Part shown: positions 30,701-54,700 of the stretch, piece by piece | How positions within the stretch are numbered: position 1 is the stretch's first letter | How the letters are laid out: each line of letters starts with the position of its first letter | Assembly: GCF_006345805.1 (NCBI RefSeq) | Contig: NC_043024.1 | Location: 11,966,001 to 12,030,000 of the forward strand | Source: Octopus sinensis | Lineage: Eukaryota | Reading direction: 5' to 3' | DNA length: 64,000 nt | Notes under the pieces: model-generated | Databases searched by the model: none | What the model was told of the DNA's origin: nothing | The model's input: only the letters and a program-made list of their open reading frames with translations | Made by a program: the position numbers and the translations under genes

Positions 30701-33700
30701 ATGCTTAACGGTATTTCGTTTGCCGCTACGTTCTGAGTTCAAATTCTGCTGAGGTCGACTTTGCCTTTCATCCTTTCGGGGTCGATAAATTAAGTACCAG
30801 TTACGCACTGGGGTCAATGTAATCGACTTAATTCGTTTGTCTGTCCTTGTTTGTCCTCCCTGTGTTTGGCCCCTTGTGGGTAGTAAAGAAATAGGTATTT
30901 CGTCTGCCGCTACGTTCTGAGTTCAAATGCCACCGAGGTCGACTATGTCTTTCATCCTTTCGGGCTCGATTAAATAAGTACCAGTTACACACTGGGGTCG
31001 ATGTAATCGACTTAATATCTTAGTCTGTCCTTGTTTGTACCCTCTGCGTTTAGCCCCTTGTGGGCAATAAAGAAATAAGTTTAGGGTGGGCAAAGTCAAT
31101 TACACAGACCCCAGTGCGTAACTGGTACTTGTTTCTTCGACCCCAAAAGGATGAAAGGCAAAGTTGACTTCAGTGGAATTTGAACTCAGAATGTACAGAT
31201 GGACAAAATGCCACTAAGCAGAGGATGAAATGCAAAGTAAACCTCAGTGGAATTTGAACTCACAATTTAAGTACAGATGAAATTCCACTAAACATTTTGT
31301 CCGGTGTGCTAATGATTCTGCCAGCTCACTGCCTCCAACCTAATATCAATAAAGTATCAAATATTTTGGTGCGTGACTTCTGACCCATGCTGTATTTTTG
31401 TTCAGTGTTCTGCTCATTCACTCTGACCTCGTCTTTCCTACCTACAGAATGATAGACACTTTCTTTCCTCTGTATTTATTGTTGTTGAATAGGAGTGATT
31501 GATCGTCTGGGTGTTTTTAAAGTTTAGCCTTAAAGTTAGCTACAGCTTGCCTGCCGTTAGGACTTGAAATACAGGTAAAAAGTCAACTTTTTAAACCAAT
31601 ATACATAATAATGACTATGCAATGTTCTGCAAGACTTTGTGTGATTGTGTACAGAACGTATTTTGTATATTCTATGCATTTGAAGACATTTATGTCAATA
31701 TTTACTTACTTAAATATATTTTTTGATTAGAAGCGGGTTGAAAGTTTATTGGTTTAAATGTTGTTTTTTTTGGCAGCCAGAGAAGTAGAAGGAACCACTC
31801 TAATGCCTTTCATAACAGAACTATTGATGACAGAACAGCCAACAGGTAGCTTAACCTCCGAAGTATTCCTTTTATTTTTTCAAATAATATTGTTTATCAA
31901 TTAAAAATAAGAAACAAGCAACCGGTCCGTTGACAAGATTTGATCCCCTGTTTAATGTTTGCCCGGCAGTCACATCACGGATAGATGGTCTGTCACTCCA
32001 TATTTGCTTCTATAAATATTTTGTTCTTATGGTATTTTAATATTTTGGTGGAGGCGCAATGGCCCAGTGGTTAGGGCAGCGGACTCGCGGTCATAGGATC
32101 GCGGCTTCGATTCCCAGACCGGGCGTTGTGAGTGTTTATTGAGCGAAAACACCTAAAGCTCCACGAGGCTCCGACAGGGGATGGTGGTGATCCCTGCTGT
32201 ACTCTTTCACCACAACTTTCTCTCACTCTTACTTCCTGTTTCTGTTGTACCTGTATTTCAAGGGACCGGCCTTGTCACTCTCTGTGTCACGCTGAATATC
32301 CCCGAGAACTGCGTTAAGGGTACACGTGTCTGTGGAGTGCTCAGCCACTTACACGTTAATTTCACGAGCAGGCTGTTCCGTTGATTCGGATCAACCGGAA
32401 CCCTCATCGTCGTAACCGACGGAGTGCTTCCTTCCTTTATTTTAATATTTTATATTATTTTAAATCATGAATGGCAGAAAAGCTAATAGCACTGATGTCA
32501 GTTATATCGATGTTTAGAGAAATGTAATGACAGGCAGAGTATAGAGAAAATGAACAAGCAATATATACAGATACGAGCAAAACGCCTCTCCGGTCCAATG
32601 GACGGTGCTGAGTTGTCAGACACTTAAACCAAATTTTCTCAAAACAACTTGTCCGACCGTTCCATAGGCCTCCCCTTTGAGAAACACTGATTTAACCTAA
32701 ATTTGAGACACCAGCAAAAGAAGAAATAAAGATAGACTCTTTTTCTATTCCAAAGAATGCTTTATCGATTGCATTCTCACCTGGAATCGTCCAATCCATG
32801 CTAGCATCGAAAGCTGACGTTAAACGATGATATATATGTGTGTGTGTGTGTGTGTGTGTGTGTGTGTGTGTGTGTGTGTATACGAGGTAAAGGTCCCCCC
32901 CGTCCAATGGACGGTGCTGAGTTGTCAAACATTTAGACCAAATTTTCTCAAAACAACTTGTCCGACCGTCCCATAGGCCTCCCCTTTCAGAAACACTGAT
33001 TTAACCTAAATTTGAAACACCAGCAAAAGAAGAAATAAAGGTAGACTTTTTTTCTATTCCAAAGAATGCTTTATCGATCGCATTCTCACCTGAAATCGAT
33101 TTTTGTAATTTTTTTCAAGACTTATACACGCCCTGATACCGTCGGTATCTACATATCAAATTTGAGCGCAATCGGATGGAGGATGCCCGAGATCCGAGAA
33201 GACACACACACATACACACACACACACACATACACACACACACACACACACACACACACACACACACACACACACACACACACACACACACACACACACA
33301 GAACGGACTTATTTTCTATTCCAAAGAAAACGATTTTTTTGTATTCCAAAGAAAAACGATTTTTTTTTTGTATTCCAAAGAAAAACGATTTTATTCACGC
33401 AAATATGCAAACCGAAGAAACGATTCCATACTTGTTCATTGGTGATATATTTATGAATTTACTGATATATGTTTTATGTTTGTTCTTTAATCCGGCTGTT
33501 GATATTTTGGTAATGTCTTCTAAAATTGATAATCTTGAAAATTGTCTCTTGCTACCAGAATTCCTTCAAACAACAGAAATAACAACAAAAATACCGACGA
33601 TTGTGGGAACAACACCAATTACATCACCGATACCAGTTATATCAACAACGATACCAGTTATATCAACGGTTATGTCGACGACAGAAGGGAAGGCTTGTGT

Positions 33701-51700: not shown

Positions 51701-54700
51701 ATTGGATATCCGTGGCTGCTTCGAGCCATTGTTTCGTAAGTAACAAACTAAATCTCTGCCCATGCTACAGCTGCCCTGATGTGTTGTTCAAGTCTCATGT
51801 TTTGCGTTACCACACCTTATTACTTCTAACTGTCGTCAACTAATTTGTTTCTCAATTTTCCATAAAAATACAATTACATATTTTTGTCACTGAGTTTCCT
51901 AGTTTTTGATTGGTTCTCAGTTTTTCTGTCATGTGACGTGGTTTTCTTGTTTTGCCTTCCTGTTATCTTGTTGTCTTCTTGTTGTTTTGGTATCAGTATT
52001 TCCTTGTCCATTATTTTGTGTTGTAATCATATTTTAGTGACATTTGGACATTTGTCGTTCGTGCTTTCTGCTTTAAATATCTTCTCTTAACTTGACTATG
52101 TGTTTCTTGTTTCCATTTGAAATAATGTCTCAATTCATTTTCTGAATGTTTTTACTAATCTACACCTACAAGTATATATCTGAGACTCCCTTCGGTCATG
52201 ACACAGACCATGGGATTGCACCTAGAAAGACCTAGAAAGTTACCCTCCCAGGCACAAGTCCTGGCAAGGTTGTTTATGGAAGACCAATAGTCGCTCATGC
52301 ATACCGGCCTCCTCTCTTCACGCCACTGATGTTATCCAAGGGAAAAGCAAAGGGGCCTATACAGCTTGGCACCTGTGACGTCGCAACACATTTCTACAGC
52401 TGAGTGAACTGGAGCAATGTGAAATAAAGTGTCTTGCTCAAGAACACAGCACGCAGCCCGGTCCGGGATTTGAACTCACAACCTTGTGATCGTAACCCTC
52501 CCAGGCACAAGTCCGTGTGGTTGGTAAGCAAGCTACTTGCCACACAGCCACTCCTATGCCTACGAAAATATTTTGACAAATTAAATTTAAATGTTGAAGT
52601 GAATCTAACACCTGCAGGGCTGGACCCAGAAGTGTTATAACAACTTCATATGACATGACTAGTTAGAAGCAGAAGCTGGTACAGGTAGAAGAGCTAGCAA
52701 GCAGAGTGATACAGAAAAAGGGGTGCTTGGATGAAGTGGGTATCAGACCATGGAGCAGAATGTCATCTGGTAGAACATGGAATTGGAACCCACTAAAGAT
52801 CAAGTTCTTGATACGGGAGTTCTATAAGGTACTCCTCGGCCCAACCAACCTAATTATGAGGCAGAGTGAAAACTCCTCTATATCCCCGGTGTTCTAAAAC
52901 AGACCCTTAAACACTTCCTAGGCAGCTGCTCCAAGGCACTGAATGAGGAATGCTTTCACAAGAGATATGATCAAACACATGACCATCGTTAAAGCCATCA
53001 GAAGAGAACAGCAAAAATGTCCACAATTTAGCAGAAAGACAACCTCTGTTAAAAAAGGAGAGGGACCAAAAACAAGACCCAAGAATATCTCCAGTGGTTT
53101 GCTTCCCACAACACATGACTAGGTGATGGACGTTGTTCTGGAGAAGCAGCTGAAATCTCGGTTGCCTATCACCCAGACCTTGTTAAAACCAGATATGATC
53201 TTACTTTCATGGACTACAAGGCAGCTAACCCTATCGGAGTTAATTGACTCCTGGGAAGAAGGGTTGGGAGGGGCATAAAAACGGTTGGACTACTTGTTGG
53301 ATCAATGTAAGGAAGACCATCTTTCTTCCATGCATTCTTCACATTCAGTAATCATTTTCAGAAGCATTTTTACACCTCTTTCTTTTCAGAAACACCAGGA
53401 ACAAATGTAACAACTCAATCTGCCCCATTAAGCATTCCCCGCTGCTCATCTTCCAAGGCCCACCACTCCCTCCAACACTCTTCTAACAACAGCACTATTT
53501 AGCTCCTGTAATCATACAACAACATAATCTATACAAACGTGGGTGGGGTGAGGTTGAAAAGTTCTGGCTTTGGGTAAAAGAAAATACAGAAGGATCAGTT
53601 AACTATGATGTTATCCAACATATTCCCCTTTCAGATTCACACACTTATTGCAGTGGTCCTTCAGTTTTTCTAAGCCCTGTTAAAGAACTCGGAAGTTTGG
53701 GCCCCTAACCAAGCATTTCGTGACACCCTTAAAGCCAAGAACTTTTCTGCCCCCACCTCATATATATATATATTATACATACATATGAGGGGTGTTGCAA
53801 AGTTCCTGGTTTTGGGTAAAAGCAAATACAAGAGGATCAGTTAATTATGATTTTATTCAACATATTCCCCTCTCAGATTCACACACTTATTGCAACGGTC
53901 CTTCAGTTTTTCTAGGACCTTTAAAAGAACTCAGAAGGTTGAGCCCCCAACCAGGCCCTTTTCACAATACCCTTAAAGCCAGGAACTTTACAGCACCCAC
54001 CTCATATTTCATCCCCTTTGAGCCATAAGTTACCTTTTCCTCTCCCCTCAAACTGCTTCCATTAGCATTCACCCCACACTCCCAATATTGTCCCTTCCTG
54101 ATTCTTAACAGCTCAGCCATGAAGTAGAACATCCGTGGCTATCTTTTATTTGTTTCAGTCATTTGACTGTAGCCATACTGGGGCACCACCTTGATATATT
54201 TATTGTTTTGACTTCGTGTTTTAACTTTTTGTTTTTTCTATGAATTAACGATCTCTTAATATGGCGCTTACGAATAATTCTGTGTTAAACAGGAATTAAC
54301 GAAACGTTGCAATATTTTACACCCCACAGATACAAGAAAAGATATGGACAACTCTGCTTCAGCAACTAATATTTACAGTATTTATGCTTATTTCAGGGTT
54401 TACATCTTCCAGGGCTTTCACTACAAGAGAACTGACCACTCCAGCAAAAGGACAAACATATGAAGTCTTTATACCCACTTCTGAGTTTCCAGCTAAAGGC
54501 CACCCGTCTACAGTATCTCTGCCTACTGTAGCATCAACGACCGAAGAACTGACCACTCCAACAACAGGTCATTCATCTACCATGTCTACATCATCTTCTG
54601 GATCAACAACTGAAGTGAACACCTTATCTTCTGGACACACATCTACAGTATCTGCAATATCTTCTGGATCAACAACTGAAGTGACCACTCCATCTTCTGG

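Follow-up and report, generated by a model that had tools for sequence, protein, structure and literature searches.

Background

F5/8 type C (F5/8C, or discoidin) domains are characteristic of lophotrochozoan mucin-like proteins, insect hemolectin consists of three VWD-C8-TIL assemblies followed by F5_F8 domains, and LDL_recept_a is a listed hallmark of SCO-spondin (Lang et al. 2016, PMC4948705). A gene with modules of these kinds lies on the forward strand of a 64-kb stretch of the Octopus sinensis genome (NC_043024.1, positions 11,966,001 to 12,030,000), which is referred to here as the window and whose own numbering is used throughout. In its central part the gene very probably codes for a run of four modules within a secreted, gel-forming, mucin-like protein; each module is made of a linker and a divergent discoidin domain that is split over two exons, A and B.

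SCO-spondin is a giant secreted protein with VWD/TIL, LDLa and F5/8C modules. The CysD domain, with about ten Cys residues and a WxxW motif, forms non-covalent cross-links inside the Pro/Thr/Ser-rich (PTS) region of vertebrate mucins. In the discoidin family a disulfide between the terminal Cys residues holds the two ends of the domain together at one pole, and the loops at the opposite pole bind ligands, as in the factor V (FV) and factor VIII (FVIII) C2 domains, neuropilin b1, DDR, discoidin I/II and CBM32.

Exon organisation of the array

BLASTN within the window, with exon A (33559-33983) and exon B (35053-35194) as queries, found four copies of each exon in alternating order. The exon borders were set by reading the sequence and by aligning the four upstream regions. 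Together with public gene models, above all the mucin-2-like isoform X1 of Octopus vulgaris (CAI9742241.1), the DNA gives the following predicted exons.

33559..33983, + strand: exon A1, a 44-residue Thr/Pro/Ile-rich linker followed by domain residues 1-97 (33693-33983, ACVDTNGL...KPFGK)
35053..35194, + strand: exon B1, 142 nucleotides (nt), coding for the final 47 domain residues; the FGK-QFSA junction is present in CAI9742241.1
37614..38065, + strand: exon A2, linker and N-terminal 97 residues of domain 2
39145..39286, + strand: exon B2, from BLASTN and splice-site reading
41708..42192, + strand: exon A3, linker and N-terminal 97 residues of domain 3
43967..44108, + strand: exon B3, from BLASTN and splice-site reading
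47113..47633, + strand: exon A4, the longest linker (76 residues) and N-terminal 97 residues of domain 4
51594..51735, + strand: exon B4, the most divergent B copy, with 86% nt identity to B1

The A exons are 425, 452, 485 and 521 nt long (A1 to A4), in every case 2 mod 3, and all four copies have the acceptor TTGTCTCTTGYYACCAG/AA and the donor AAG/GTAG. Exon B is 142 nt long in all four copies, with the acceptor ttttcag/CAATTC and the donor TTTC/gtaagtaac. The phases are 1 (start) and 0 (end) for exon A and the reverse for exon B, so that A cannot be joined to A in frame, whereas A-B-A-B can. Spliced in silico, A1-B1-A2-B2-A3-B3-A4-B4 is 2451 nt long, or 817 codons, and has no stop codon. The predicted structure is thus four A/B units in an open spliced frame. 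An earlier, first-pass annotation of this DNA had proposed the phase 1 to 0 course of exon A and the 142-nt exon B as the phase 0 to 1 link in all four units, and both proposals are borne out by the A lengths, the four B copies with their conserved AG/GT sites, and the open frame. It had also pointed out that open reading frame (ORF) calling misses exon B, and indeed the exon B reading frame is not among the entries of the start-codon-based ORF list for the window.

The A+B units are symmetric phase 1-1 cassettes of 567, 594, 627 and 663 nt, all multiples of three. Symmetric phase 1-1 cassettes are the usual class among shuffled extracellular modules (Patthy). Each unit encodes a Thr/Pro/Ile-rich linker of 44 to 76 residues and then the sequence ACVDTNGL...FGK-QFSA...HGCFEPVF. 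From the first to the last Cys the domain has 138 residues (C2 to C139 in the 144-residue segment ACVD...GCFEPVF), in agreement with the previously estimated size of about 138 residues between two Cys.

Units 1-3 arose by recent duplication: their introns, too, are 91-99% identical, and the three units are therefore not independent of each other as evidence. Unit 4 is older. The similarity between B4 and B1 ends about 29 nt upstream of the acceptor and exactly at the donor, and the flanking introns beyond these points are not alignable. A 3.3-kb contig from another octopod (Logan SRR11869384) holds an exon B and then the next exon A. Compared with the window, its exon B is 92% identical and its introns about 72-78% identical, and both splice sites are conserved. 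The differences in the domain-coding part of exon A number 10, 2 and 25 at codon positions 1, 2 and 3, and correspond to 23 synonymous and 12 non-synonymous codon changes. Across octopods the nt identity of the domain is 87-92% versus about 75% for introns, with a third-position bias. These alignments point to strong purifying selection over the entire domain, loops included, across octopods.

Only seven matches came from an exhaustive HMMER search over 1.84 billion representative proteins. The A-B junction (...HYMPFGK-QFSATDS...) is present in CAI9742241.1, to which exon A1 is 96.5% identical (tblastn). Two hypothetical proteins of Argonauta hians hold two complete A+B domains with PTS sequence between them, and have the same B-to-A junction (...CFEPLF-Q...) as the window. 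The Argonauta domain retains 69% amino-acid identity. Two metagenome or assembly fragments from ENA (P0004 and P0006) are short ORFs with 55% and 44% identity to exon A, and both end in ...FGKV. Since both read through the same phase-0 donor, the position of the A-B intron appears to be conserved in more distant species. Another match of the exhaustive search, P0007, a repetitive Thr/Asn-rich protein of 2151 residues (E=4.8e-4), was judged to be a compositional false positive and was excluded. A more distant relative is the mucin-2-like protein XP_064639835.1 of the nemertean Lineus longissimus (4464 residues), which phmmer matches with E=9.6e-22 over 10 stretches at 19-26% identity.

Whole units could be skipped without a frameshift, given their phase 1-1 borders and lengths, and the public O. 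vulgaris model holds only one unit. Both facts would fit a gene in which exon B is unused, or only some of the units are used, and in which the A and B copies are partly decaying duplicates that are skipped in the mRNA. Such a gene is very improbable. None of the eight exons is interrupted by a stop, their consensus splice sites are intact, the A exons are not joinable in frame without B, the Argonauta models hold two complete units, and the conservation of B4 is restricted to the exon. The single-unit Octopus model itself looks truncated rather than skipped. CAI9742241.1 (907 residues) maps onto window exons at 96-100% identity (tblastn), which places the source of the window in O. vulgaris or a species very near to it. 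The model holds just one discoidin-like unit out of four, is without the giant PTS exon described below and skips parts of the first VWD assembly. It ends in an exon of 21-22 residues that maps inside a B-to-A intron (36244-36309 or 40352-40414). Because this short terminal exon falls within that intron, the model looks like a truncated or fragmented prediction.

Relationship to the discoidin superfamily

AlphaFold2 on the single domain sequence gave a predicted local distance difference test (pLDDT) score of 47, which is unusable. A 12-row alignment was then assembled by hand from octopus, Argonauta, the two ENA fragments and six Lineus copies. With it, AlphaFold2 gave a model with pLDDT 94.2 and a predicted template modelling score (pTM) of 0.89, and all five models were at 91.9 or above. 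Foldseek against the PDB found 107 matches at E<=1e-3, the best of them with probability 1.00, E of about 1e-5 and template modelling (TM) scores of 0.57-0.66. The best match is FVIII C2 (E=1.1e-5, TM 0.61), and other leading matches are the CASPR2 discoidin domain, neuropilin-1/2 b1/b2, FV C2, DDR2 DS, lactadherin C2 and CBM32. The AlphaFold2 model and the Foldseek matches thus show the distorted jelly-roll beta-barrel of about 150 residues that defines discoidin domains. This combination of AlphaFold and Foldseek on the spliced A+B peptide had been named by the first-pass annotation as a check on its discoidin assignment, and the top matches are discoidin domains.

Sequence searches were much less direct. 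Pfam hmmscan at E<=10 matched neither the window copies nor any member of the family taken singly, and phmmer against PDB sequences gave no match for the spliced domain. A word-indexed protein search, run with the single domain and later with the alignment, yielded nothing beyond one ORF of another octopod that reads through the end of exon A. A profile hmmsearch against PDB sequences gave five weak matches with E >= 0.25, three of which are F5/8C or CBM32 proteins. The sole Pfam signal comes from the Argonauta two-copy ortholog, which matches PF00754 with 18.3 bits (E=0.0027, profile positions 62-117). This is below the gathering threshold of 28.2 bits, and by the Pfam criterion the domain is therefore a non-member.

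Profile-profile comparison gave a clearer result. An FVIII C2 sequence that matches PDB entries over its full length was used to gather canonical F5/8C proteins. Against this single sequence hhalign aligned only the C-terminal half, in register (E=0.17). Against an untrimmed canonical alignment with many partial sequences it aligned the N-terminal 25 columns (C..GM..I.D.It; E=0.018). Both results are too weak. For the final comparison the canonical set was trimmed to 11 full-length domains and one poorly aligning Lineus type was removed from the family profile. The resulting alignment spans 128 columns and runs from one terminal Cys to the other, with a score of 31.4 and P=1.7e-4. Reversed family sequences scored 16.0, and 60 column shuffles scored 10.4±1.6 with a maximum of 15.0, so that the family score against F5/8C is about 13 standard deviations above the shuffles. 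The alignment pairs both terminal Cys, the start C.[ED]..GM...I.D..I and the end R[IY].[IR]I...L.[IE]..GC. The four window copies, Argonauta and every full-length Lineus copy have C2 and C139, and both residues pair with the canonical Cys. Homology to F5/8C over the full domain therefore has moderate support at the profile level.

In 24 canonical F5/8C sequences the invariant residues are I17, A19, S20, R36, L37, W46, W56, Q73 and G74 (numbering of alignment A3). The octopus domain family keeps only the I..I.D..I(T) start and the RL/LRP motif and has no conserved Trp. The canonical core motifs (the Trp before and within WLQVDL, TQG, and ITASS) are absent, and W46, W56, Q73 and G74 are all missing. 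The description of the domain in the first-pass annotation, as a highly divergent discoidin-like domain that lacks the usual Trp motifs and is repeated four times, stands on the predicted fold, the hhalign result and the lack of any Pfam match for the window copies. Its suggestion of a new subfamily is also upheld, as the domain is Trp-less and invisible to Pfam, yet hhalign aligns it from Cys to Cys with F5/8C.

Several points weigh against membership in the superfamily. No Pfam, PDB-sequence or NCBI-style family match is significant for the window copies. IFT25, SUN2 and APC10, which have other galactose-binding-like folds, are among the Foldseek matches in the same range of E-values, and the TM-scores are moderate, with a root mean square deviation of 4-6 Å. 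The AlphaFold2 model rests on a 12-row, hand-built alignment that includes one poorly aligning Lineus domain type. The final hhalign probability is 49%, from small hand-made profiles of 11 sequences each, and confidence in the middle of the alignment is low.

These points could be taken to mean that the domain is a galactose-binding-like jelly-roll which is not a true F5/8C homolog, belonging either to a separate family (CBM32-, IFT25- or SUN/APC10-like) or to a new one with convergent terminal Cys. The unmet PF00754 threshold, the closeness of the IFT25, SUN2 and APC10 E-values to the discoidin ones, and the loss of the invariant W46, W56, Q73 and G74 all speak for such an origin. However, eukaryotic discoidin domains proper take the top Foldseek ranks and most of the top 50. 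The end-to-end hhalign with canonical F5/8C, which pairs both Cys and the start and end motifs far above the shuffles, is also at odds with a separate origin, and the architecture fits known carriers of F5/8C (hemolectin, lophotrochozoan mucins and SCO-spondin). A separate origin is improbable, and there is little doubt that the domain is a remote, highly divergent member of the F5/8C (discoidin) superfamily.

Gene architecture

The remaining parts of the gene within the window are listed below.

557..19015 (approximate span), + strand: two VWD-C8-TIL assemblies, the N-terminal part of a gel-forming mucin, from ORF translations, tblastn of CAI9742241.1 and Pfam
21045..27228, + strand: six LDL-receptor class A (LDLa) exons, from Cys-rich ORFs and tblastn of CAI9742241.1, directly upstream of the array
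29846..29878, + strand: linker exon of 33 nt, phase 1 to 1, which joins the last LDLa exon to A1; the encoded peptide is present in CAI9742241.1
54397..64000, + strand: giant PTS (mucin) exon, with the acceptor tttcag/GG at 54396/54397; it leaves the window at the 3' end, so that any C-terminal VWC/CTCK dimerisation region of the mucin would lie beyond the window

The architecture is two VWD-C8-TIL assemblies, six LDLa domains, four repeats of a PTS linker and domain, and then a giant PTS region. CAI9742241.1 matches the Pfam families VWD (PF00094), C8 (PF08742) and TIL (PF01826), and matches LDLa (PF00057) with E=8e-41. The last LDLa exon runs from phase 1 to phase 1 according to a reading of the sequence. 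The acceptor of the PTS exon is in phase 1 and so fits the phase in which B4 ends. At least 3233 codons are open in the ORF that extends from 54300 past 63998, and the PTS exon is longer than 9.6 kb. It consists of tandem repeats of 66 nt (22 residues) and 72 nt (24 residues) that are rich in Ser, Thr and Pro (Tandem Repeats Finder). The gene has both the N-terminal VWD-C8-TIL assemblies and the long Pro/Thr/Ser-rich tandem-repeat region of gel-forming mucins, and PTS linkers are also present inside every exon A.

Phase-1 introns flank every module (class 1-1) from the last LDLa exon (27112-27228) onward, including the exon at 29846-29878 and the A+B units. The sole phase-0 intron from that exon onward lies inside the discoidin-like domain, within a predicted beta-strand (K97-Q98).

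Other features of the window concern its repeats. The repeats of the PTS exon are grouped in higher-order units of 144-285 nt, and the antisense strand of this exon has many long spurious ORFs of up to 342 residues. The window has a GC content of about 40% and is rich in (CA)n and (TA)n microsatellites. Three intron tracts stand out: a TG/CA-rich block of about 700 bp (28770-29480), an AT-rich (TA)n-type tract of about 2.2 kb (47780-50050), where GC falls to 21% and which expands the A4-B4 intron to 3.96 kb, and, shortly before B4, about 370 bp of (TG)n (51100-51470). An interspersed repeat family occurs on both strands in many introns, for example at 10062-10606, 19524-20110, 20507-21070 (- strand), 35592-35858, 39687-40000 and 50097-50382. 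Its copies have recurring translations and usually adjoin a (TA)n or (CA)n tract. The family is probably a SINE-like element, and ARAGORN found no tRNA-like head in the copies.

Possible function of the domain

The module would consist of a short, O-glycosylatable Thr/Pro linker and a 138-residue domain, bounded by phase-1 introns and with one phase-0 intron inside. Since both termini of a discoidin domain sit at one pole, the domain may hang as a bead off the extended, glycosylated backbone with the loops of the opposite pole exposed. Four or more domains per chain, multiplied by the many chains of a disulfide-linked polymer (formed through VWD), could then create a multivalent binding surface. 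The likely role would be the non-covalent binding of a polar ligand, such as mucus or microbial glycans or another mucus protein. Within the PTS region the domains may thus serve as knots for cross-linking or capture, a job that is done by CysD in vertebrate mucins. By this analogy, a binding or cross-linking role has close to an even chance of being correct.

In the predicted structure, residues 23-44, 58-63, 86-92 and 123-129 form loops of polar or charged character, with none of the hydrophobic spikes seen in FV/FVIII C2. A glycan or protein ligand thus seems more likely than a membrane lipid, and in the model the polar loops seem to argue against membrane insertion in the style of FV/FVIII.

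The domains may instead be real discoidin folds without a specific ligand, whose only part is to interrupt the PTS region, as inert spacers that resist proteases or as folding knots. The aromatic and hydrophobic spike residues that contact ligands in canonical domains are not recognisable, and few core positions are near-invariant between species (C2, I19, L31 and P33), as might be expected of spacers. The strong purifying selection in octopods, which extends to the loops (nt identity and third-position bias as above), and the amino-acid identity kept by Argonauta speak indirectly against inert spacers, as does the fact that tandem multivalent arrays are typical of binding modules. A purely structural role is less likely, and the binding or cross-linking role is preferred. 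A further extension of that role is tentative: the Trp-less module may represent a lectin or cross-linker family specific to the mucins of lophotrochozoans (cephalopods and a nemertean), with a novel ligand specificity, that replaces CysD in gel properties or in the trapping of microbes.

Implications for annotation

The kind of protein, the kind of domain and the A-B splice, which is in a public gene model, are already known. Two things are new: the corrected gene structure with its four units, and a discoidin subfamily, shorter and Trp-less, which is missed by profile libraries and occurs both in cephalopods and in a nemertean. A literature search found no paper on an octopus mucin with discoidin domains or on an invertebrate gel-forming mucin with them. 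A paper on the octopus skin-mucus proteome mentions mucins and SCO-spondin-like proteins, and not the discoidin-like domain of octopus. Because F5/8C already characterises lophotrochozoan mucin-like proteins, the module is classed as a divergent subfamily rather than as new biology. The finding leaves the current understanding standing, improves gene annotation and defines a subfamily.

Current hidden Markov model libraries miss this entire discoidin subfamily in invertebrate mucins. Surveys of mucin evolution that rely on domain matches therefore count too few discoidins, and the gene models for octopus are cut short. With a curated profile, the annotation would be put right in both cephalopods and nemerteans. 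Should the domain bind glycans or microbes, it would provide a handle on the cross-linking of cephalopod mucus and on bacterial capture, and also a compact discoidin scaffold with a single disulfide.

Relation to described proteins

Canonical F5/8C domains (PF00754; FV/FVIII C2, neuropilin b1/b2, lactadherin, DDR1/2 and CASPR2) share with the octopus domain the beta-barrel fold, a similar size, a Cys near each end, the start C..(L)GM...I.D..It and the end (A)R.[IL]RI ... L[R].E..GC. The octopus domain differs in being about 16 residues shorter, in lacking the invariant Trp, WLQVDL and TQG, and in having predicted loops that are polar rather than hydrophobic spikes.

Lineus XP_064639835.1 also has many Cys-bounded copies of the divergent domain, interleaved with PTS and LDLa after VWD-C8-TIL. 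It differs from the octopus gene in that its copies are far more numerous and fall into several sub-types, and in that LDLa alternates with the domains instead of preceding them. At about residues 1500-1650 this protein has a second Cys-bounded repeat of about 150 residues (ICLENAKTIDYLKSDD...WIDDDW...SPDGINWS...HACYE), which contains Trp. From its sequence the second repeat looks closer to canonical F5/8C, though it is also undetected by Pfam.

Lophotrochozoan mucin-like proteins and hemolectin/hemocytin have N-terminal VWD-C8-TIL assemblies and then discoidin-type domains beside PTS, as does the octopus gene. In octopus, however, the discoidins are invisible to Pfam, follow six LDLa domains and are each set in their own PTS linker. 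SCO-spondin shares the combination of VWD/TIL, LDLa and F5/8C modules, but it has thrombospondin repeats and no giant PTS exon, whereas the octopus gene has a PTS exon and no thrombospondin repeats.

The CysD domains of MUC2, MUC5AC and MUC5B are unrelated in fold and sequence, and the octopus domain has two Cys only; there is no CysD domain in the window. The likeness is one of functional analogy: each is a small globular domain without glycosylation that lies between stretches of PTS sequence in a gel-forming mucin, and each is a candidate site of non-covalent cross-linking.

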